Virus record (IMG/VR): IMGVR_UViG_3300036770_003657
Coordinates: 310,001-374,000 of that record
Length of the DNA: 64,000 nt
Direction: 5' to 3' (one strand)
Each line of letters starts with the position of its first letter. Positions within the stretch are counted from its first letter, which is position 1. The notes beneath the pieces were generated by a model. The model made no database searches, was not told the origin of the DNA, and was given only the letters and a program-made list of their open reading frames with translations. Of the stretch, positions 6,665 through 15,655 are shown one piece after another. The position numbers were made by a program, and so were the translations under genes.

Positions 6665-7096
6665 TCAAATTATATATTCGTAATTTATGGTATCTACGTT
6701 TTCACGAAATATATTAGCACCATTTCTTAGATGAAACTTACGGGCCATTTCAGTTTTTGGACTAAGGGTTACAAATCTAGTGACTGTAGGATATAATTTT
6801 GGAATTTCGTCAACTACAGCAAATAATAACTTACTGGCCGCACCCGCACGATAACTCCATATGGTATAAAATATGGCAGTGGTGAGGGTTGTGTCATCTC
6901 TACTTAGATCTTCTACAGTTTGTGGAACAAAATTGTGTAGACTAACGCATATCATAGCCTCTAATTTTTCTTCAACTAGAGCACCTACAAATCTATTACG
7001 ACTAACACGGAAATCTATAGGAATGTCTGGACGTACTGGGTCATCTTTGATATATTCTAACAAAGGGTTATCTGTGTCCTTTATGAGATTTAACAT
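6665..7096 (-). CDS. Conserved phage protein, GNAT-like fold possible
   Basis: IFYTIWSYRAGAASKLL...VTLSPKTEMARKFHLRNGA. Confidence 0.5.
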   Translation of the reverse strand: MLNLIKDTDNPLLEYIKDDPVRPDIPIDFRVSRNRFVGALVEEKLEAMICVSLHNFVPQTVEDLSRDDTTLTTAIFYTIWSYRAGAASKLLFAVVDEIPKLYPTVTRFVTLSPKTEMARKFHLRNGANIFRENVDTINYEYII

Positions 7097-8257: not shown

Positions 8258-8503
8258 TTGGATATAGAATTTATCTGCCTCTCAAAACTTGGTGTAGGAT
8301 CTGTTCTAGTAAGACATACGGATATTATTACTATGGAGCTTACTCCTATGGGATTCACTCGTATTGAATTTGGTTACGGTGAACATCTCATAGTGGAGGA
8401 AACACCTATTCAAATACTAAACAAGATTAGAGCAGCACAAGAACTCAGTGAGCAGTCTGTTGAATCAACAATTAAAGAACCTATTAATAAGGAGTCTAAA
8501 TAA
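8258..8503 (+). CDS. Small protein, FlbD-like fold possible
   Basis: DIITME.....TRIEF..GEHLIVEETPIQIL resembles the FlbD family pattern. Confidence 0.35.
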   Translation: MDIEFICLSKLGVGSVLVRHTDIITMELTPMGFTRIEFGYGEHLIVEETPIQILNKIRAAQELSEQSVESTIKEPINKESK

Positions 8504-9107
8504 TCTCTACACTAATTTTTTCTTTAGTTTTAGTAGGAAACAGTTGATTAGTTACATGATGCAGTCTTCTGCTTCTATCAGGATCACCAAATCCAATTCC
8601 CATTAATAAACTAGGACCGTTTGTCATTCCTAAAATTTGTTGTATCTGTGTTCCATCAAAACAGGCACAACAACCAGTTTTATAACCTAAAATATTACTG
8701 ATTAAATTAGCATAACCTGCCGCTATACCTATGGCCATGTCGCTATCTCTAGTTGAAGTAGCTTTGGAACCATTTTCATAAATATGGTTTTTTATTTTAT
8801 GTCTATCACTGGTTTCTATAGCCTCAAACACAAGTAAAAGATTAGCTAAAGTTTGACTGTTAGTTGTCCACTCTCCATTAGGTAACAAAAATCCTTCAGT
8901 AGTTGCATGTATAGATTCAATAATATTTCTATTTACTACAGCATAAACCTTATAAAAAGCATGATTTTGTTTACTGGGGCAATTAGATACAGCATGTATT
9001 ATAAGTTCTAAATCCTCTTGCGGAATATTTTTAGAAATGTCCCAATTACGCTGACAATGTTGACTTCTTATTATAGCTTTTTCAAGTTCTTGATGAGTAA
9101 TTTGCAT
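8496..9107 (-). CDS. Nitroreductase-family flavoprotein
   Basis: RSQHCQRNWD, CPSKQN, LLMGIGF. Confidence 0.8.
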   Translation of the reverse strand: MQITHQELEKAIIRSQHCQRNWDISKNIPQEDLELIIHAVSNCPSKQNHAFYKVYAVVNRNIIESIHATTEGFLLPNGEWTTNSQTLANLLLVFEAIETSDRHKIKNHIYENGSKATSTRDSDMAIGIAAGYANLISNILGYKTGCCACFDGTQIQQILGMTNGPSLLMGIGFGDPDRSRRLHHVTNQLFPTKTKEKISVEII

Positions 9108-9143: not shown

Positions 9144-9218
9144 TGGTGCCTCTTCTTGGGAACGATCCAAGGACCCCCACCTTATCAAGATGGTGCTCTA
9201 CCACTGAGCTAAAGAGGC
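9144..9218 (-). tRNA. trnI: tRNA-Ile(GAT)
   Basis: CCATC-TTGATAA-GGTGG, CCA; T-loop ATCGTTC. Confidence 0.88.
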
Positions 9219-9222
9219 ATAT

Positions 9223-9297
9223 TGGATGCGGAGGACGGATTCGAACCGCCGATCTCTAGGTTATGAGCCTAGTGAGTTTCCTCTTCTCTACCCCGCG
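9223..9297 (-). tRNA. trnM: tRNA-Met(CAT), initiator-like
   Basis: C1:A72 mismatch, loop CTCATAA, CCA. Confidence 0.85.
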
Positions 9298-9303
9298 ATT
9301 GTA

Positions 9304-9378
9304 TGGTGGACCGGCGGAGGATCGAACTCCGACTAAAGGCTTGCAAAGCCCCTGTGCTACCATTATCACTACCAGCCC
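9304..9378 (-). tRNA. trnA: tRNA-Ala(TGC)
   Basis: G3:U70, loop TTTGCAA, CCA. Confidence 0.92.
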
Positions 9379-9384
9379 ATTGTT

Positions 9385-9460
9385 TGGCTCCGGTCCAGGG
9401 ATTCGAACCCCGCTTCATGGATTAACAGTCCACCGCCTACACCTAGCTTGCTCGACCGGA
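9385..9460 (-). tRNA. trnN: tRNA-Asn(GTT)
   Basis: GTGGA-CTGTTAA-TCCAT, CCA. Confidence 0.92.
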
Positions 9461-9467
9461 ATATACT

Positions 9468-9559
9468 TGGTGGAAGGAGAGGGATTCGAACCCTCGGAGC
9501 AGGTTACCCCACTCGACAGATTAGCAATCTGCTGCCTTAAGCCTCTCAGCCATCCTTCC
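9468..9559 (-). tRNA. trnS: tRNA-Ser(GCT)
   Basis: Long variable arm, loop TTGCTAA, CCA. Confidence 0.93.
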
Positions 9560-9568
9560 TAATACTAC

Positions 9569-9652
9569 TGGTGCCCTGAGAGGGACTCGAACCCCCACAC
9601 CTTACGGCACTTGCTCCTAAGGCAAGCGTGTCTACCATTTCACCACCAGGGC
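9569..9652 (-). tRNA. trnL: tRNA-Leu(TAG)
   Basis: CTTGC-CTTAGGA-GCAAG, variable arm, CCA. Confidence 0.93.
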
Positions 9653-9659
9653 TACAACT

Positions 9660-9734
9660 TGGAGCAGGATATCGGATTCGAACCGATGACATTCTCGTTG
9701 GCAACGAGACATTCTACCCCTGAATTAATCCTGC
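9660..9734 (-). tRNA. trnG: tRNA-Gly(GCC)
   Basis: TCTCG-TTGCCAA-CGAGA, CCA. Confidence 0.93.
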
Positions 9735-9758
9735 ACTACACTACTTATATCTTGTCTA

Positions 9759-9848
9759 TGGTGGAAGCGGTGAGATTCGAACTCACGGACCGTTACCAGT
9801 CGTCTGTTTTCAAGACAGGTGCATTAAACCAGGCTCTGCCACACTTCC
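9759..9848 (-). tRNA. trnS: tRNA-Ser(TGA)
   Basis: Loop CTTGAAA, long variable arm, CCA. Confidence 0.93.
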
Positions 9849-9853
9849 TTATT

Positions 9854-9929
9854 TGGTAGCAATGGTCAGACTCGAACTGACGATAGGCACCGTATGAAGG
9901 TGCTGCATTAGCCACTATGCTACATTGCT
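9854..9929 (-). tRNA. trnM: tRNA with CAT anticodon (elongator Met or Ile2)
   Basis: GCACC-TTCATAC-GGTGC, paired 1:72, CCA. Confidence 0.85.
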
Positions 9930-9930
9930 G

Positions 9931-11226
9931 TTAATTATGTGATATAAACTTAAGACCTGCTTGAGCGGCTATTGCAGCCCAAGCATCATTATGATCTTCA
10001 TCTACTGAAAAAACTGCCGCCTTAGCATTAGTTTTTTGTAACTGGCTGTTGGCAAACCTAGCCCATTCTCTAGCAATTAATTTCCATACACCTTTATATT
10101 GGCCGCTTGATGCATTGTCCACCATAAGTTCAAGATATGGAGTCTGATCCTCCATATGGAATAGTGGAGTAACTACAAAACTACATTCCCAATTTGGATT
10201 GTCACGCATATTAAAAACATCAGGATCAAGTTCACTAAAACGAGTTTTAGGATCAGTTGTGGCCATTATCATTATATCCTCTCGCCTTATACGAATTGGC
10301 ACATTGGGATATAAACTGTTAAAGGAATTCTTAACAACCTTGGCCATATAGGCTGCGGCTTTTGGAGCCCAAGATCTCATCAATTCTTGTTCCCACTTTA
10401 ACCCTTGTTTTTGATCCATACCAGTTTGTTGAACATCTTCATCTAATTTATTATCAGAATCACTTGGAACTGTTACACCCATTGTGTTAACACGAATCTT
10501 TCCTTGTTCTACCTGATCAATTTGTGCTTGATTACCAAATGATAACGGATCCGTTATTACAAGTTGTGGTCCATATTTTGTTCTACGAAACATAAAATTA
10601 CCACCATTTAGATCTCTTTTATAACCACTTTTATAAAGATATCGTATGATATTGATTGCTTCTATCAATTGCGGATCTTTTATACTATTGCCTTTCTTAT
10701 CTTTATATTTAGGATCAAGTAAAGTTTGAGTTATAAGATAAACTAATTCTGACATTATAATAATACCTGGTCTCCCTACTGTATAGGGATATTGATCTTG
10801 GAGACTATTAAAATCAACATTCAATATTTTACTAAAAACCATAATCAATTCATCTGAGTCGAGGTCTCGCCAGTTACTTAACTTTTCTATGTCTAATTCA
10901 AAATATGGAGCACCTCTTTTAGGCTTTACTATATTGGCATTGTAGACCTGAGGTAGATAAGGATTATCGGTTTGATCCTTTAATGACATCAACTTATTAA
11001 TGTATGCGTAATAACCGTCTAATTTAGGCTTATTTTGATCAAATCTAGATACTTTCTTTGCTGTGCCAATACCCAATTCGCCTTCTGGTTGATCATAAAC
11101 TTTACCAAAATGTCCACTACCTAATTCAGGTTGTGTCTTGGATATTGCTGCCATTCGTTGCTTTTGAGTTGGGCCTTGTGTAACTGGAAGATCCTCACTG
11201 ATAATGTCTGTAATTTTCATAATCAT
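9931..11226 (-). CDS. Protein-kinase-like (Ser/Thr/Tyr or small-molecule) protein with extra C-terminal module
   Basis: Gly-rich loop LGSGHFGKVY, AKK, catalytic-loop-like RDLNGGN, ITDP at the DFG position. Confidence 0.7.
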   Translation of the reverse strand: MIMKITDIISEDLPVTQGPTQKQRMAAISKTQPELGSGHFGKVYDQPEGELGIGTAKKVSRFDQNKPKLDGYYAYINKLMSLKDQTDNPYLPQVYNANIVKPKRGAPYFELDIEKLSNWRDLDSDELIMVFSKILNVDFNSLQDQYPYTVGRPGIIIMSELVYLITQTLLDPKYKDKKGNSIKDPQLIEAINIIRYLYKSGYKRDLNGGNFMFRRTKYGPQLVITDPLSFGNQAQIDQVEQGKIRVNTMGVTVPSDSDNKLDEDVQQTGMDQKQGLKWEQELMRSWAPKAAAYMAKVVKNSFNSLYPNVPIRIRREDIMIMATTDPKTRFSELDPDVFNMRDNPNWECSFVVTPLFHMEDQTPYLELMVDNASSGQYKGVWKLIAREWARFANSQLQKTNAKAAVFSVDEDHNDAWAAIAAQAGLKFISHN

Positions 11227-11240
11227 ATTTAGTTAGGTTT

Positions 11241-11326
11241 ACCATATTGAAACACACTGATTGAACCTTTACCTCTTCCGAGTCCGTTCTTACCGTCAGG
11301 CGTTACACAATGTGCTTCAATATGGT
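11241..11326 (-). ncRNA. Long-stem hairpin RNA (family member 2)
   Basis: 16-bp stem ACCATATTGAAGCACA/TGTGTTTCAATATGGT (G:U on minus strand). Confidence 0.65.
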
Positions 11327-11449
11327 TGCCGGTTACAAAATCCGGCGTTACACTTTCGGAGTAACTGTTCTACCTATCCCGTCACCGACTTCGTTTAAGA
11401 CTCGCCGCCTTTATACACGCTGATGGCCACGTGTTCTGGTATTGCTACC
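11323..11449 (-). ncRNA. CCA-ending structured RNA with anticodon-stem-loop mimic
   Basis: Ends GCCGG-ATTTTGTAA-CCGGC-AACCA; internal GTTAC/GTAAC hairpin; not a cloverleaf. Confidence 0.5.
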
Positions 11450-11514
11450 ATATTTGAGCATACTACTCATCGGCTAGCCGCCATTTGTCTGTTCGGCAAT
11501 ATGCTCAAATATGG
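11448..11514 (-). ncRNA. Long-stem hairpin RNA (family member 3)
   Basis: Perfect 15-bp stem enclosing a core that is repeated at 12851-12889. Confidence 0.75.
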
Positions 11515-11586
11515 CAGGGGTACTCCGACTCGAACGGAGAAATGCGGGATCAAAACCCGGTGTTTTACCAATTAGACTATACCCCA
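11512..11586 (-). tRNA. trnQ: tRNA-Gln(TTG)
   Basis: Loop TTTTGAT, CCA. Confidence 0.92.
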
Positions 11587-11592
11587 ACTGAT

Positions 11593-11667
11593 TGGCGGTC
11601 CCAACGGGAATCGAACCCGTCCCTGCGGCGTGACAAGCCGCTATACTCACCGATATACTATGGAACC
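11593..11667 (-). tRNA. trnD: tRNA-Asp(GTC)
   Basis: GCGGC-TTGTCAC-GCCGC, CCA. Confidence 0.93.
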
Positions 11668-11672
11668 ATATT

Positions 11673-11746
11673 TGGCGTCCCTGCACGGATTCGAACCGCG
11701 ACTAAGAATTTTGGAGATTCACGTGCTACCGTTACACTACAGAGAC
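11673..11746 (-). tRNA. trnW: tRNA-Trp(CCA)
   Basis: Loop CTCCAAA, G73, CCA. Confidence 0.9.
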
Positions 11747-11753
11747 ATTGTTT

Positions 11754-11828
11754 TGGTGCTCTGTGAAGGACTTGAACCCTCATCGCCGGATTACAAAACC
11801 GGAATTCTAGCCTTTGAAATAACAGAGC
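11754..11828 (-). tRNA. trnT: tRNA-Thr(TGT)
   Basis: CCGGT-TTTGTAA-TCCGG (U:U at 31:39), CCA. Confidence 0.88.
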
Positions 11829-11833
11829 GTTGG

Positions 11834-11911
11834 TGGAGTTAGGAGTCGGATTCGAACCGACGGGTTGACAGTTTTGCAGACTGTTGCGTTGGGCCTCTCC
11901 GCCATCCTAAC
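11834..11911 (-). tRNA. trnC: tRNA-Cys(GCA)
   Basis: ACAGT-CTGCAAA-ACTGT, U73, CCA followed by a second CCA. Confidence 0.92.
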
Positions 11912-11914
11912 ATT

Positions 11915-11989
11915 TGGTACGGGCACTCGGGCTCGAACCGAGAACTTACTGGTTAAAAGCCAGTTACTCTACCTTTGAGTTATACCCGC
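11915..11989 (-). tRNA. trnK: tRNA-Lys(TTT)
   Basis: ACTGG-CTTTTAA-CCAGT, CCA. Confidence 0.93.
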
Positions 11990-12041
11990 AAAATAAAAAA
12001 CCCTTGGCAAAATCTATGACTTACCCAAAGGCCATAATTCT

Positions 12042-12116
12042 TGGTACACCCAACGGGAGTCGAACCCGTCTTTCCAGCTTGAAAGGCTAGCGTCCTAACC
12101 GATAGACGATGGGTGC
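12042..12116 (-). tRNA. trnE: tRNA-Glu(TTC)
   Basis: CTAGC-CTTTCAA-GCTGG, CCA. Confidence 0.93.
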
Positions 12117-12122
12117 TTTGTT

Positions 12123-12207
12123 TGGTGGAGAGCCAGGGACTCGAACCCCGTATGCCTGAGGCGTCGGATTTACAGTCCGATGCAGTAACCTGTTCTGCTC
12201 GCTCTCC
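12123..12207 (-). tRNA. trnY: tRNA-Tyr(GTA)
   Basis: TCGGA-CTGTAAA-TCCGA, variable arm, CCA. Confidence 0.93.
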
Positions 12208-13029: not shown

Positions 13030-13058
13030 ATTATATACAGTCTCCAGCATATTGTCAA
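13030..13058 (-). promoter_or_regulatory. Consensus sigma70 promoter P3
   Basis: TTGACA-17 nt-TATAAT; palindrome CTGTA-N5-TACAG spans the -10 box. Confidence 0.85.
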
Positions 13059-13292: not shown

Positions 13293-13321
13293 ATTATACA
13301 CTTGCTAGTACAAGTTGTCAA
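13293..13321 (-). promoter_or_regulatory. Consensus sigma70 promoter P2
   Basis: TTGACA-17 nt-TATAAT; spacer contains inverted repeat ACTTG-N6-CAAGT. Confidence 0.88.
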
Positions 13322-13383: not shown

Positions 13384-13412
13384 ATTATATGGTGATTTCA
13401 TTGACCTGTCAA
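13384..13412 (-). promoter_or_regulatory. Consensus sigma70 promoter P1
   Basis: TTGACA-17 nt-TATAAT. Confidence 0.85.
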
Positions 13413-13715: not shown

Positions 13716-14294
13716 TTAAGCAAAGTCTTTAACTAATTCGTTTCTAACTTCATCTTTAAGTTGAATTTCATAAGGATAAAGATCATGCCCAATCCCTAGG
13801 TATACTTTATTGGCGGAATCCTTAAAATCTATGATTTCACCAGGTTTAAGTTCAAACCTAAGAAAATGAACCGCACTCGTTTTGGAATCTGTGCTACGTT
13901 CGAGATCTTCATCTGCAATTGCATATATACGCTGATGTCCTTGGATTCTTAAAAATACTGTATCTTCAATATTTTTAAGTTGTTCCAATTTCACTTTACG
14001 TAGATCAGGATCCCCGTATTCCAAAGTCATAGTGGCAATAAGATTCATACCGTTTGGTATTAAAGGATTATAAGCATCTAGTTCATCCTTGATACCATTA
14101 GTTGTAAATGTACGCTCAATGAACAACATTTCCTGAACTTGGTACTTTACAGTATCTCTATCTTCAAAAGCCAAAGTACAATTTGGTCCAATTGATACTT
14201 GACGTAGGCGACGATGATCTATAGCACTGCGTCTAAAGTCATCACGAACCTTACTATAATCTTCCAATGTCATTAAATCGTCTTGAGTTAACAT
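13716..14294 (-). CDS. DUF3501-family protein (rubrerythrin-associated)
   Basis: FEDRDTVKYQVQEMLFIER, ELDAYNPLIP, KTSAVHFLRFEL; follows rubrerythrin as in proteobacterial loci. Confidence 0.85.
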   Translation of the reverse strand: MLTQDDLMTLEDYSKVRDDFRRSAIDHRRLRQVSIGPNCTLAFEDRDTVKYQVQEMLFIERTFTTNGIKDELDAYNPLIPNGMNLIATMTLEYGDPDLRKVKLEQLKNIEDTVFLRIQGHQRIYAIADEDLERSTDSKTSAVHFLRFELKPGEIIDFKDSANKVYLGIGHDLYPYEIQLKDEVRNELVKDFA

Positions 14295-14305: not shown

Positions 14306-14740
14306 TTATTGCTCTGCTTTAAATGCGTCAAGAGTTTTCTTGAACTTACCAGCGTGGCTACGTTCTGCCTTGGCCAATGTTTCAAACCAATCAGCAATCT
14401 CGTCAAAACCTTCATCACGAGCATCACGTGCCATACCTGGGTACATATCTGTGTACTCATGTGTTTCACCAGCAATGGCTGATTCAAGTGCTTCAACAAC
14501 TGTTTTAGCGCTCATACCAGTTTCTGGATCACCGCTTCCACCATTGATCAAATATTCCATATGACCGTGTGCATGACCAGTTTCACCTTCTGCTGTATGA
14601 CGGAAGATTGATGCTACATCTGGTGCACCTGCAATGTCTGCCATGTTTGCGAAATACAAGTATCTACGATTTGCTTTACTTTCACCTGTAAACGCATCCT
14701 TAAGATGCTGTTCTGTTTTACTACCTACTAGTTTAGTCAT
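14306..14740 (-). CDS. rbr: Rubrerythrin
   Basis: [41 protein letters not shown] diiron motifs. Confidence 0.92.
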
Positions 14741-14785
14741 TGTTTTCTCCTTGTGTGTATGACGTGTTTTATTGTACATTTATTT

Positions 14786-14842: not shown

Positions 14843-15655
14843 TTAAATTTTTTTATAAACAGCAATTACAGTATGCCCAATATCAAAGTTTATATTATGA
14901 TCTTTGATATCATATCTATTCTCATCAAGTAAACTACGATGAAAATCTGCTAGGGGTTCTTCGTATATTTCCACTTGTCTTAGGTCAAACAAGTTGGCAA
15001 TATTAGTCAAACATTGTTTGGTAAATCGTGTAACATGATGTGGAGGATAGTTTAGTGCCCAACCTTCTATATTGCCTAAAAAACCGTCTTCGTTTGGCAC
15101 ACTGAGTATGAGTATACCATTAACTTTTAAACAGCGTAGAGCATTGGATATAAAAGATCGTGTGTCATCTACATGTTCTAATACTTGGAATCCACATATT
15201 ACGTCATATAGGCCTTGATGTTCTTGTATGCTTTGTTTTATTACTTTCGGGTTTTGGCTGTAAGGATCTAGCCCAGTATAATCGGCTTCAACCATTTTAC
15301 CAAAGTAACCCTCTCCGCAGCCAATCTCCAGTATATTGTCATCTGATATGATGTATCTTTTGGCAAAGTCAAATTCTGGTTTGACCAATTGATAGTACCA
15401 AGGAAATGCCTGTAGTTGACTATAGAAGTTTGAACCACCCATAACAGGTGGTTTATAAAACCTAAGATCACAATCCATACATCTGTATAATTCTATATCA
15501 GAGGTAATATCTTCTGTGACATCAACTGGTGTATTATCAAACAAGGGATCTGTTTTATAAGCATTATGTATAAAATCACGGCTATACGTTTTATGTATAG
15601 CTGTGTTACTACTATGACATAAAGGACATTTTTTCATCTTTTTCCATATATTCAA
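14843..15655 (-). CDS. Class I SAM methyltransferase with N-terminal Zn-ribbon
   Basis: CPLC...CMDC, ILEIGCGEG, FQVLEHV, HHVTRF. Confidence 0.85.
   Translation of the reverse strand: MNIWKKMKKCPLCHSSNTAIHKTYSRDFIHNAYKTDPLFDNTPVDVTEDITSDIELYRCMDCDLRFYKPPVMGGSNFYSQLQAFPWYYQLVKPEFDFAKRYIISDDNILEIGCGEGYFGKMVEADYTGLDPYSQNPKVIKQSIQEHQGLYDVICGFQVLEHVDDTRSFISNALRCLKVNGILILSVPNEDGFLGNIEGWALNYPPHHVTRFTKQCLTNIANLFDLRQVEIYEEPLADFHRSLLDENRYDIKDHNINFDIGHTVIAVYKKI

Follow-up and report, generated by a model that had tools for sequence, protein, structure and literature searches.

The protein kinase of phage T7, gp0.7 (T7K), is a hyper-promiscuous enzyme that disarms many defence systems by pervasive phosphorylation, with a C-terminal DNA-binding SO domain that biases its choice of substrates (PMC13645617, 2026). 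Homologues without the SO domain are found in ~400-kb jumbophages (Salmonella phage Munch, Escherichia phage G17), where their function is still to be elucidated (PMC13645617). In phage T4, the internal proteins (IPs) and Alt reach the prohead by means of propeptides of 10-20 residues, which gp21 then removes (PMC5694885), and the internal proteins are highly basic (PMC8442874). Polyvalent proteins, described from phages and conjugative elements, combine kinase, GNAT and nucleotidyltransferase (NTase) domains; for those of phages, delivery in the capsid and separation by proteolysis have been predicted (Iyer, Burroughs, Anand, de Souza and Aravind 2017; PMC5512222). Here we describe P0001, an open reading frame (ORF) on the minus strand of a 64,000-nucleotide window (C1:310001-374000 of IMG/VR record IMGVR_UViG_3300036770_003657, a 399,796-bp virus record, 36.6% G+C), which in its parts resembles these known kinds: jumbophage T7K homologues, polyvalent phage effectors and T4 capsid-targeting leaders.

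Our best explanation, to which we assign a probability of about 0.5 as a whole, capsid loading included, is that P0001 is a two-enzyme 'polyvalent' host-takeover effector. In it, a 743-nt kinase cassette has entered in frame between an 11-residue leader and a C-terminal module (C module), at a 12-nt repeat encoding E-D-(L/V)-(P/Q). The kinase would phosphorylate host proteins broadly, like T7K, and the C module, a putative divergent GNAT-type acyltransferase, would add a second activity or a targeting role like that of the SO domain. The leader, M-K-I-T-D-I-I-S-E|D (the bar marking the candidate cut), would act like the capsid-targeting propeptide of T4 Alt, which is the least certain step. 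P0001 would then enter a T4-type prohead and be cut by an S77 protease after E11 and E263, and DNA injection would bring both products, a 28.6-kDa kinase and a 19.3-kDa C module, into the host. Transcription with the neighbouring tRNA genes from three consensus sigma-70 promoters would provide an early supply in addition. Genetic code table 11 was used for all translation; the features of the gene, in window coordinates, are as follows.

9931-11226, minus strand: whole ORF P0001 (leader, T7K-type kinase cassette and probably GNAT-like C module), 431 aa, stop codon at 9931-9933
11194-11226, minus strand: leader, residues 1-11 (MIMKITDIISE), family start M3 at ATG 11218-11220, candidate cut after I-S-E11
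10438-11193, minus strand: predicted kinase module, residues 12-263, from profile, fold and invariant-residue evidence
11104-11121, minus strand: Gly-rich loop, G36-G41 (G36-S-G-H-F-G41)
11053-11055, minus strand: K58, VAIK-type lysine of the predicted catalytic set
10885-10887, minus strand: E114
10612-10614, minus strand: D205, predicted catalytic aspartate
10597-10599, minus strand: N210, asparagine of the predicted catalytic loop
10549-10551, minus strand: D226 of the DPL motif, predicted Mg-binding aspartate
9934-10437, minus strand: C module, residues 264-431, probably of GNAT-like fold, from a model with a predicted local distance difference test score (pLDDT) of 91.1 and matches to GNAT structures
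10442-11184, minus strand: kinase cassette, in-frame 743-nt segment missing from the related contig L022, from BLAST break points
11185-11196, minus strand: direct repeat copy 1, GAGGATCTTCCA (E11-D12-L13-P14), upstream border of the cassette, from alignment A3 and BLAST break points
10429-10440, minus strand: direct repeat copy 2, GAAGATGTTCAA (E263-D264-V265-Q266), downstream border of the cassette, from alignment A3 and BLAST break points

A T7-type minimal kinase and its partner module

Residues 12-263 are, on profile and model evidence, a genuine minimal protein kinase of the T7K family, and the predicted kinase as such belongs to an already known kind. The original prediction had called the protein kinase-like from the motifs GSGHFGKVY (residues 36-44), RDLNGGN (204-210) and ITDP (224-227), set between an N-terminal MKITDIISE (3-11) and a KLDE (260-263). 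All of these are present, and conservation argues against chance: across the 118 family members in alignment A1, K58, E114, D205, N210 and D226 are invariant and G38 is nearly so. By alignment, these positions make up the full catalytic set of a protein kinase, with E114 presumably in helix alphaC. Assignment specifically to the T7 gp0.7 family, which narrows the earlier call, comes from a PHROGs match (phrog_15752, the T7 gp0.7 family; E 1.3e-7, residues 35-244) and from hhalign of the A1 profile against T7 gp0.7 from NC_001604 (probability 98.3%, E 1.8e-14, 155 columns). The alignment spans the D-x-H/N-x-G-N catalytic loop and the I-T-D-P-(V/L)-S-F segment, in which DFG is replaced by a DPV-type motif (V-I-T-D226-P-L-S-F here versus Y-I-T-D-P-V-S-F in T7).

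The structural check that the original prediction had called for agrees with this assignment. The AlphaFold model of the kinase module has a pLDDT of 90.6, and Foldseek returned at least 500 matches at E<=1e-3, the top ones listed being mostly protein kinases; VIA-align of residues 26-231 placed IRE1 (Z 8.6) and TTK (Z 8.5) among matches that were all protein kinases. Template modelling (TM) scores are low (0.30-0.37) because the C-lobe is reduced or missing, as in T7K. We consider it unlikely that the module is instead a small-molecule phosphotransferase (APH- or choline-kinase-like) or an inactive pseudokinase: kinase-fold phosphotransferases of this type, APH(3'), APH(2'') and PsiK, do occur among the Foldseek matches, with the substrate-binding C-lobe missing here, but the best Foldseek and VIA matches are protein kinases, the homology to T7K is direct and T7K is an experimentally established protein kinase (PMC13645617), while catalytic residues that are all invariant across 118 sequences speak against a pseudokinase.

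The family is large and mostly uncultured. Exhaustive search retrieved 728 kinase relatives, mostly standalone proteins of 210-250 aa from uncultured aquatic phages, and tblastn of P0001 and of the relative P0058 against 50,697 phage records found only the Stenotrophomonas phages RAS14 and CM1. Whole-protein searches of Pfam (E<=10), NCBIfam and PDB sequences gave no match for P0001, and the curated Pfam family Phage_T7_kinase (PF27024) has only a 'faint' precomputed match in the relative P0007 and none in P0001.

Set beside T7 gp0.7, P0001 shares the homologous minimal core, the D-x-H/N-x-G-N loop, the I-T-D-P-(V/L)-S-F segment in place of DFG, the lack of a canonical C-lobe and a two-domain layout in which the C-terminal domain is not a kinase. 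It differs in that the SO/DNA-binding domain is replaced by the GNAT-like module, so that the hhalign match stops at the kinase core, and in having 34 residues before the Gly-rich loop where T7 has 66; gp0.7 belongs to a 40-kb podovirus, whereas P0001 lies inside a tRNA array of a 400-kb myovirus-type genome with a T4-type head. With the homologues of Munch and G17 it has in common a jumbo phage as carrier, the loss of the SO domain and a DPV valine that is not conserved (DPL here) (PMC13645617). It represents another subfamily, given the tblastn result above, and neither the kinase fusion to a GNAT-like module nor the leader has been described before.

Residues 264-431 are, by homology and model, an independent module, in line with the earlier mention of a second module after KLDE. 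It recurs alone in proteins of ~178 aa (up to 94% identical), or with other partners in proteins of 254-1019 aa. Its model is ordered apart from the first 9 residues, and the order of secondary-structure elements, alpha1-alpha2-beta2-beta3-beta4-alpha3-beta5-alpha4-beta6, is consistent with that of GNATs. GNATs lead the Foldseek matches (E 4.5e-3) and the Atlas structure matches (TM 0.37-0.45), and exhaustive VIA-align gave NatD at Z 5.7 (133 residues, root-mean-square deviation 4.3). Language-model Atlas neighbours were unannotated clusters and added nothing.

A GNAT-like acyltransferase fold is therefore probable from the models, with several points weighing against it. All of the GNAT scores fall under confident thresholds (Z 5.7, TM <0.5); none of 25 C-module family members matched a GNAT Pfam model at E<=1, only scattered chance families appearing; and hhalign found no similarity between the C-module profile and a GNAT-bearing 752-aa ORF of the same genome (described below). 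GNATs bind the pyrophosphate of acetyl-CoA through a Q/R-x-x-G-x-G/A motif after beta4. At that position, between beta4 and alpha3, the C module has a conserved Gly-rich loop, SGQYKGVW, whose G, Y, G and V are nearly invariant; a W stands where the motif has its last G/A, which makes it non-canonical.

P0001 is embedded in 17 tRNA genes, which lie in two blocks around it on the same strand. Its stop codon is 1 nt from the end of tRNA-Met (9929), and tRNA-Gln starts at 11512, 285 nt upstream of the ORF start.

9144-9929, minus strand: downstream tRNA block, 9 tRNAs (Met, Ser, Gly, Leu, Ser, Asn, Ala, Met, Ile)
11512-12207, minus strand: upstream tRNA block, 8 tRNAs (Tyr, Glu, Lys, Cys, Thr, Trp, Asp, Gln)

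The original prediction had described a kinase-like gene embedded in the tRNA array, and had named translation or defence proteins as possible targets. The gene does lie inside the array, but residency there is a property of the C module, not of the kinase: where this module stands alone, its gene lies within a tRNA array in the contigs of four of five relatives (L022, L023, L025 and L026), the next tRNA being 11-14 nt away, and does so even with a different leader, whereas kinase relatives lie outside tRNA arrays (L009, L011). A translation target for the kinase is weakened accordingly as an idea, since the array was home to the module that took the kinase in. For the GNAT-like gene itself, consistent placement among tRNAs is a specific lead towards a tRNA- or translation-directed activity. 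TacT and AtaT, GNAT toxins that acetylate aminoacyl-tRNA, share with the C module a weak structural likeness (VIA-align Z 4.5-4.6) and the C-module gene lies among tRNA genes; the scores are no better than for other GNATs (NatD 5.7), and there is neither sequence similarity nor an antitoxin partner, so the likeness is a lead only.

The kinase as an in-frame cassette

Comparison with kinase-less relatives shows the gene, by alignment, to be a chimera formed by an in-frame kinase cassette placed between leader and C module. The closest relatives (P0155-P0163) encode MIMKITDVISED with the C module directly after. In contig L022, whose DNA is 94-97% identical to the window on both sides of the ORF, the same locus lacks the kinase and reads tRNA-Asp, a 19-nt untranslated region, the first 14 codons, the C module and tRNA-Ser. 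The two 12-nt repeat copies that border the cassette here, GAGGATCTTCCA and GAAGATGTTCAA, encode E-D-L-P and E-D-V-Q, and the L022 junction is a hybrid of both; the candidate cut after L-D-E263 falls inside copy 2. A second protein with both modules was absent from libraries of 5.8e9 and 1.84e9 proteins, and the kinase-less form (leader plus C module) is common and diverse. Insertion of the kinase in this lineage is the simpler reading because the fusion is unmatched in these libraries and the kinase-less form is common.

That same rarity would fit an assembly chimera, or a very recent and non-functional accident, with the 12-nt repeats misleading the assembler. We regard this as very improbable. 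Logan contigs of run X1, possibly the source sample, cover both junctions with 0 mismatches (10237-11107 and 11080-11350), and the leader-to-kinase junction is also crossed by an X2 contig (11068-11234) that comes from a separate study. The fusion is thus no product of a single assembly; the frame is unbroken across 431 codons, and 12 nt is far under assembler k-mer sizes.

Related proteins place the cassette in a wider pattern. The kinase most similar to the present one (74% identity) is the leading one of a pair of kinase modules in P0007 (1349 aa), where it is preceded by VVDE|DIPVTQGPTQKQR; P0004, P0005 and P0007 (698-1349 aa) each combine an NTase-like domain with one or two kinases, and solo kinases also occur (for example P0006 and P0010). 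Like the polyvalent proteins (PMC5512222), P0001 thus joins several effector domains in one polypeptide from a shared repertoire (C-lobe-less Ser/Thr kinases, GNATs, Pol-beta NTases), with cassette-like recombination and solo versions of each domain (the P0006 and P0010 kinases, the C module in P0155), and its relatives P0004, P0005 and P0007 fit that class directly. It differs from the class in having two domains only, in a kinase of the T7K family and not of the Verrucomicrobia/Bacteroidetes clade, and in the lack of a zincin-like peptidase domain, so that separation would need the prohead protease. The large, mostly uncultured T7K branch (728 detectable members) is modular, its kinase moving as an in-frame cassette and joining other enzymes, and two near-identical genomes here record the event, its junction still marked by the repeat.

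Two further observations concern the variability of this locus. Contigs that skip the whole ORF (joints 9924->11239 in X2 and 9927->11666 in X4) give the appearance of an empty-site allele; their flanks are <30 nt, and this weak signal is not relied on. In addition, tRNA content differs between the 94-97% identical genomes: tRNA-Met (9854-9929) and tRNA-Gln (11512-11586) flank the gene here and not in L022, and the turnover of tRNA genes appears to be as rapid as that of the kinase cassette.

The leader, possible capsid loading and probable early expression

The 11 residues ahead of the kinase recur widely. The ORF begins with two in-frame ATGs, of which the family start is M3, invariant in alignment A1, and nearly all kinase family members start with M-(K/R/L)-(L/I)-x-E-(L/I)-(I/L/F)-(E/D); the kinase-less allele (P0155 and others) bears the same leader. 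Within the genome, a strict form of the motif heads 6 ORFs where 0.04 are expected, with 0 internal occurrences. By a position-specific scoring matrix (PSSM) trained on kinases of other phages, about 10 ORFs exceed all internal-methionine controls (1,428 controls; 2,107 in a re-run), and the leader of P0001 itself scores 9.8, within the top 0.05% of these controls. In total, ~12 ORFs of the genome carry the leader and are unrelated beyond it, with clusters at 220.3-224.1 kb (68, 125, 453 and 626 aa) and 387.0-388.4 kb (273, 80 and 98 aa). The regions with leader-bearing ORFs are listed here.

C1:220296-224115
C1:387024-388377
C1:81624-82523
C1:281617-281940
C1:285181-287439
C1:375302-376186

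Their products include a PG_binding_1 plus Phage_lysozyme2 protein, a cytidylyltransferase-like (nucleotidyltransferase-like) enzyme, DUF6267 and DUF6321 proteins, a protein with DUF6934 plus a weak GNAT match, two small very basic proteins and, about 9 kb upstream of the head genes, a likely membrane protein (hydrophobic stretches, judged by eye). Basic proteins (isoelectric point, pI, >= 8.5) make up 10 of the 12, against 120 of 458 ORFs genome-wide (p 4.6e-5). A tblastn search with the 752-aa leader ORF against cultured phages gave no match. A role of the leader as a translation-initiation feature of genes without a Shine-Dalgarno (SD) sequence was considered and ruled out, the SD-match length being 3.0 in leader genes and 3.4 in others.

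Resemblance to T4 is closest for Alt. The T4 Alt N-terminus (NC_000866) reads MELITELFDE-DTTLP; the counterpart of its MELITELFDE|D in P0001 is ITDIISE-D-LP, and the 752-aa leader ORF has EIITELFD, 7 of 8 residues identical to Alt. As with Alt and IPI-III, the putative propeptide has ~10 acidic and hydrophobic residues that end in hydrophobic-x-E followed by D, and it is kept while the cargo varies, host-modifying enzymes and small basic proteins included. The cargo here differs from that of T4 in being a kinase plus a GNAT-like module, not an ADP-ribosyltransferase, and the whole protein is not basic. Sequence similarity of the leader to the IPIII capsid-targeting sequence (CTS), MKTYQEFIAE, was dropped from the argument: its score against the leader PSSM was not significant (p 0.012-0.036), the resemblance holding at pattern level only, and the Alt comparison was kept. 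T4 ipI adjoins the T4 tRNA gene cluster.

The genome also encodes the T4-type head machinery: a Peptidase_S77 prohead protease (ORF at C1:91575-92201; PF03420, E 3.5e-26, C1:91632-92072), a gp23-like major capsid protein (MCP; Gp23, E 1.1e-98) and a gp22-like scaffold ORF between the two genes. Hydrophobic-x-E within the first 12 residues characterizes 115 of 117 family N-termini versus 121 of 458 genome ORFs, and in multidomain relatives it precedes every internal kinase module (VDE|D, FDE|D, VEE|D, LDE|E, VKE|A, MSE|D and LNE|A). In both models of P0001, disorder is confined to the leader (pLDDT <50) and the junctions, and each proposed cut site falls in a disordered linker. Among cultured lineages only that of RAS14 has a clear kinase homologue (WAX21561.1, MKLIDLFED...), and RAS14 also encodes an S77 protease. 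A basic 68-aa leader ORF (C1:220296-220502, L016, minus strand) reads MRLRELYE-TASGGATSAGNV, resembling YLAE-TASAGTTSAGNV of the MCP around a candidate maturation site. A complex prediction of the S77 protease with residues 1-45 scored 0.00 and, made without controls, counts neither for nor against.

Two further observations bear on the head proteins. The 68-aa ORF, in its stretch MRLRELYE-TASGGATSAGNVVAI, copies the MCP segment YLAE-TASAGTTSAGNVATL after the leader and may mimic the MCP N-arm or be a protease substrate. Immediately upstream of the prohead protease, a 350-aa extremely acidic protein rich in D, E, G and M (C1:90512-91564; L001, 381-1433) may be a head-core component.

Several findings weigh against capsid loading. 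Three tandem perfect sigma-70 promoters (TTGACA-17-TATAAT) read into the tRNA array and the ORF:

13384-13412, minus strand: perfect sigma-70 promoter
13293-13321, minus strand: perfect sigma-70 promoter
13030-13058, minus strand: perfect sigma-70 promoter

They lie 1.8 kb upstream of the ORF on the same strand with no terminator between, and they recall T7 promoters A1-A3, the three tandem strong host promoters ahead of gp0.7. They count as real early signals, since perfect TTGACA-N16-18-TATAAT sites number 36 genome-wide against 0.8 expected (45-fold enriched), and they point to early expression of the T7 kind. The promoters seen upstream are all of this early type. With 27 sites versus ~78 expected, the T4 late motif TATAAATA is rarer than chance would have it, and it occurs upstream of neither the ORF nor the MCP gene; because TATAAATA is not enriched in the genome, late promoters are not recognisable here. 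T7 gp0.7 starts MNITDIM where P0001 has MKITDII (PSSM p ~0.004), gp0.7 is not known to be packaged, and T7 has no prohead protease; since T7's unpackaged kinase has a similar start, the leader may be an old kinase-family part with another role. On the side of cleavage, the IPIII CTS result already given counts against the reading, as does the MCP, in which LLE18|G and LAE41|T are both possible cut sites and the mature T4 gp23 N-terminus aligns ~12 residues upstream of LAE|TAS. P0001 as a whole is not basic (pI 6.5; kinase part 8.5), and the E-D-hydrophobic-P/Q repeats could be recombination scars and not protease sites.

These points favour a cytoplasmic effector of T7 type as the chief competing explanation: an intact 431-aa fusion, transcribed with the tRNAs by host RNA polymerase, never packaged or cut, its C module steering a promiscuous kinase to partners of its own (possibly tRNA- or translation-associated), much as the SO domain does for T7K, and its leader serving in folding, partner binding, turnover or some other role. 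Such an early effector we hold to be quite possible. It accounts for the 12/12 promoter matches, for the T7K-like N-terminus and for a gene that, with its kinase-less allele, lies 1-19 nt from flanking tRNAs, and it draws on the precedent of a T7K C-terminal domain that sets substrate bias (PMC13645617). It leaves unexplained, however, why ~12 unrelated and mostly basic proteins, among them a virion-type lysozyme and the possible MCP N-arm mimic, share one leader, and why the leader matches the Alt propeptide and hydrophobic-x-E stands before each module in relatives. Gene position does not decide the matter by itself: T4 Alt is packaged although its gene adjoins the ligase gene on the early-gene strand.

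Packaging and cleavage of P0001, as steps of the polyvalent-effector explanation, are on balance plausible, close to an even bet, by analogy and sequence pattern, and form a coherent hypothesis with several independent lines in its favour. The original prediction of a virion-processing N-terminus is thus upheld in part: the S77 protease, scaffold and MCP genes, the shared leader, the likeness to Alt and the disordered cut sites favour it, and the promoters, the MNITDIM start of T7 and the IPIII mismatch do not. We found no publication on virion proteomics of RAS14, CM1 or the present phage.

A broader and more tentative proposal, to which we give less weight than to either of these, is that the leader M-(K/R)-(L/I)-x-(E/D)-(L/I)-(I/L/F)-x-E is a portable signal, akin to the Alt propeptide, for capsid targeting and for the prohead protease, and that it marks an injected 'effectorome'. 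This effectorome would comprise the T7K-type kinases (hundreds), GNAT-like enzymes, nucleotidyltransferases, lysozyme and small basic DNA-binding proteins of a large clade of uncultured T4-head jumbo phages. Hydrophobic-x-E|D junctions would double as protease sites and in-frame swap points for cassettes, and the chimera would be a newly formed polyprotein from which cleavage yields two injected enzymes. If so, a promiscuous kinase would be at work in the cell ahead of all phage gene expression; arrival of a defence-disarming kinase with the DNA would change models of early phage-defence conflict. A leader acting as a T4-Alt-like capsid-targeting signal would also make the injected effectors of T4-head jumbo phages predictable from sequence alone, and would offer a natural tag with which large capsids could be loaded with foreign proteins.

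Surroundings of the locus

Between tRNA-Gln and the ORF lies a strongly structured non-coding spacer.

11227-11511, minus strand: spacer, 285 nt, tRNA-Gln to ORF

Its minimum free energy is -94.9 kcal/mol (z -6.0, 0 of 200 shuffles as stable), and it contains a terminal hairpin of ~16 bp and a 19-bp hairpin that ends ~15 nt before the ATG. The spacer is mostly absent from L022 and partly conserved in L023, and it has tRNA-like depth across metagenomes. An Rfam search of the spacer found no family; it could be a small RNA of a new type or, at the hairpin of 11240-11340, a processing site of RNase III type.

Metagenomes from freshwater, lake, subsurface and estuary sources contain DNA nearly identical to the locus. 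Elsewhere in the genome, 13 of the 36 perfect sigma-70 sites are packed into C1:10.3-19.4 kb, which maps regions of early transcription by host RNA polymerase. In related large phage contigs, a Porin_4 gene lies directly upstream of the NTase-kinase polyvalent gene (698-1349 aa; L009 8745-12097, L010 1880-5232 and the context of P0007), and ARAGORN calls a permuted transfer-messenger RNA at L009 8098-8639. Among the tRNA blocks of the window are metabolic-looking genes (6665-7096, 8496-9107, 13716-14294, 14306-14779 and 14843-15655), a set comprising a malonyl-CoA-decarboxylase-C-like protein, a nitroreductase, a DUF3501 and rubrerythrin pair and a class I methyltransferase.

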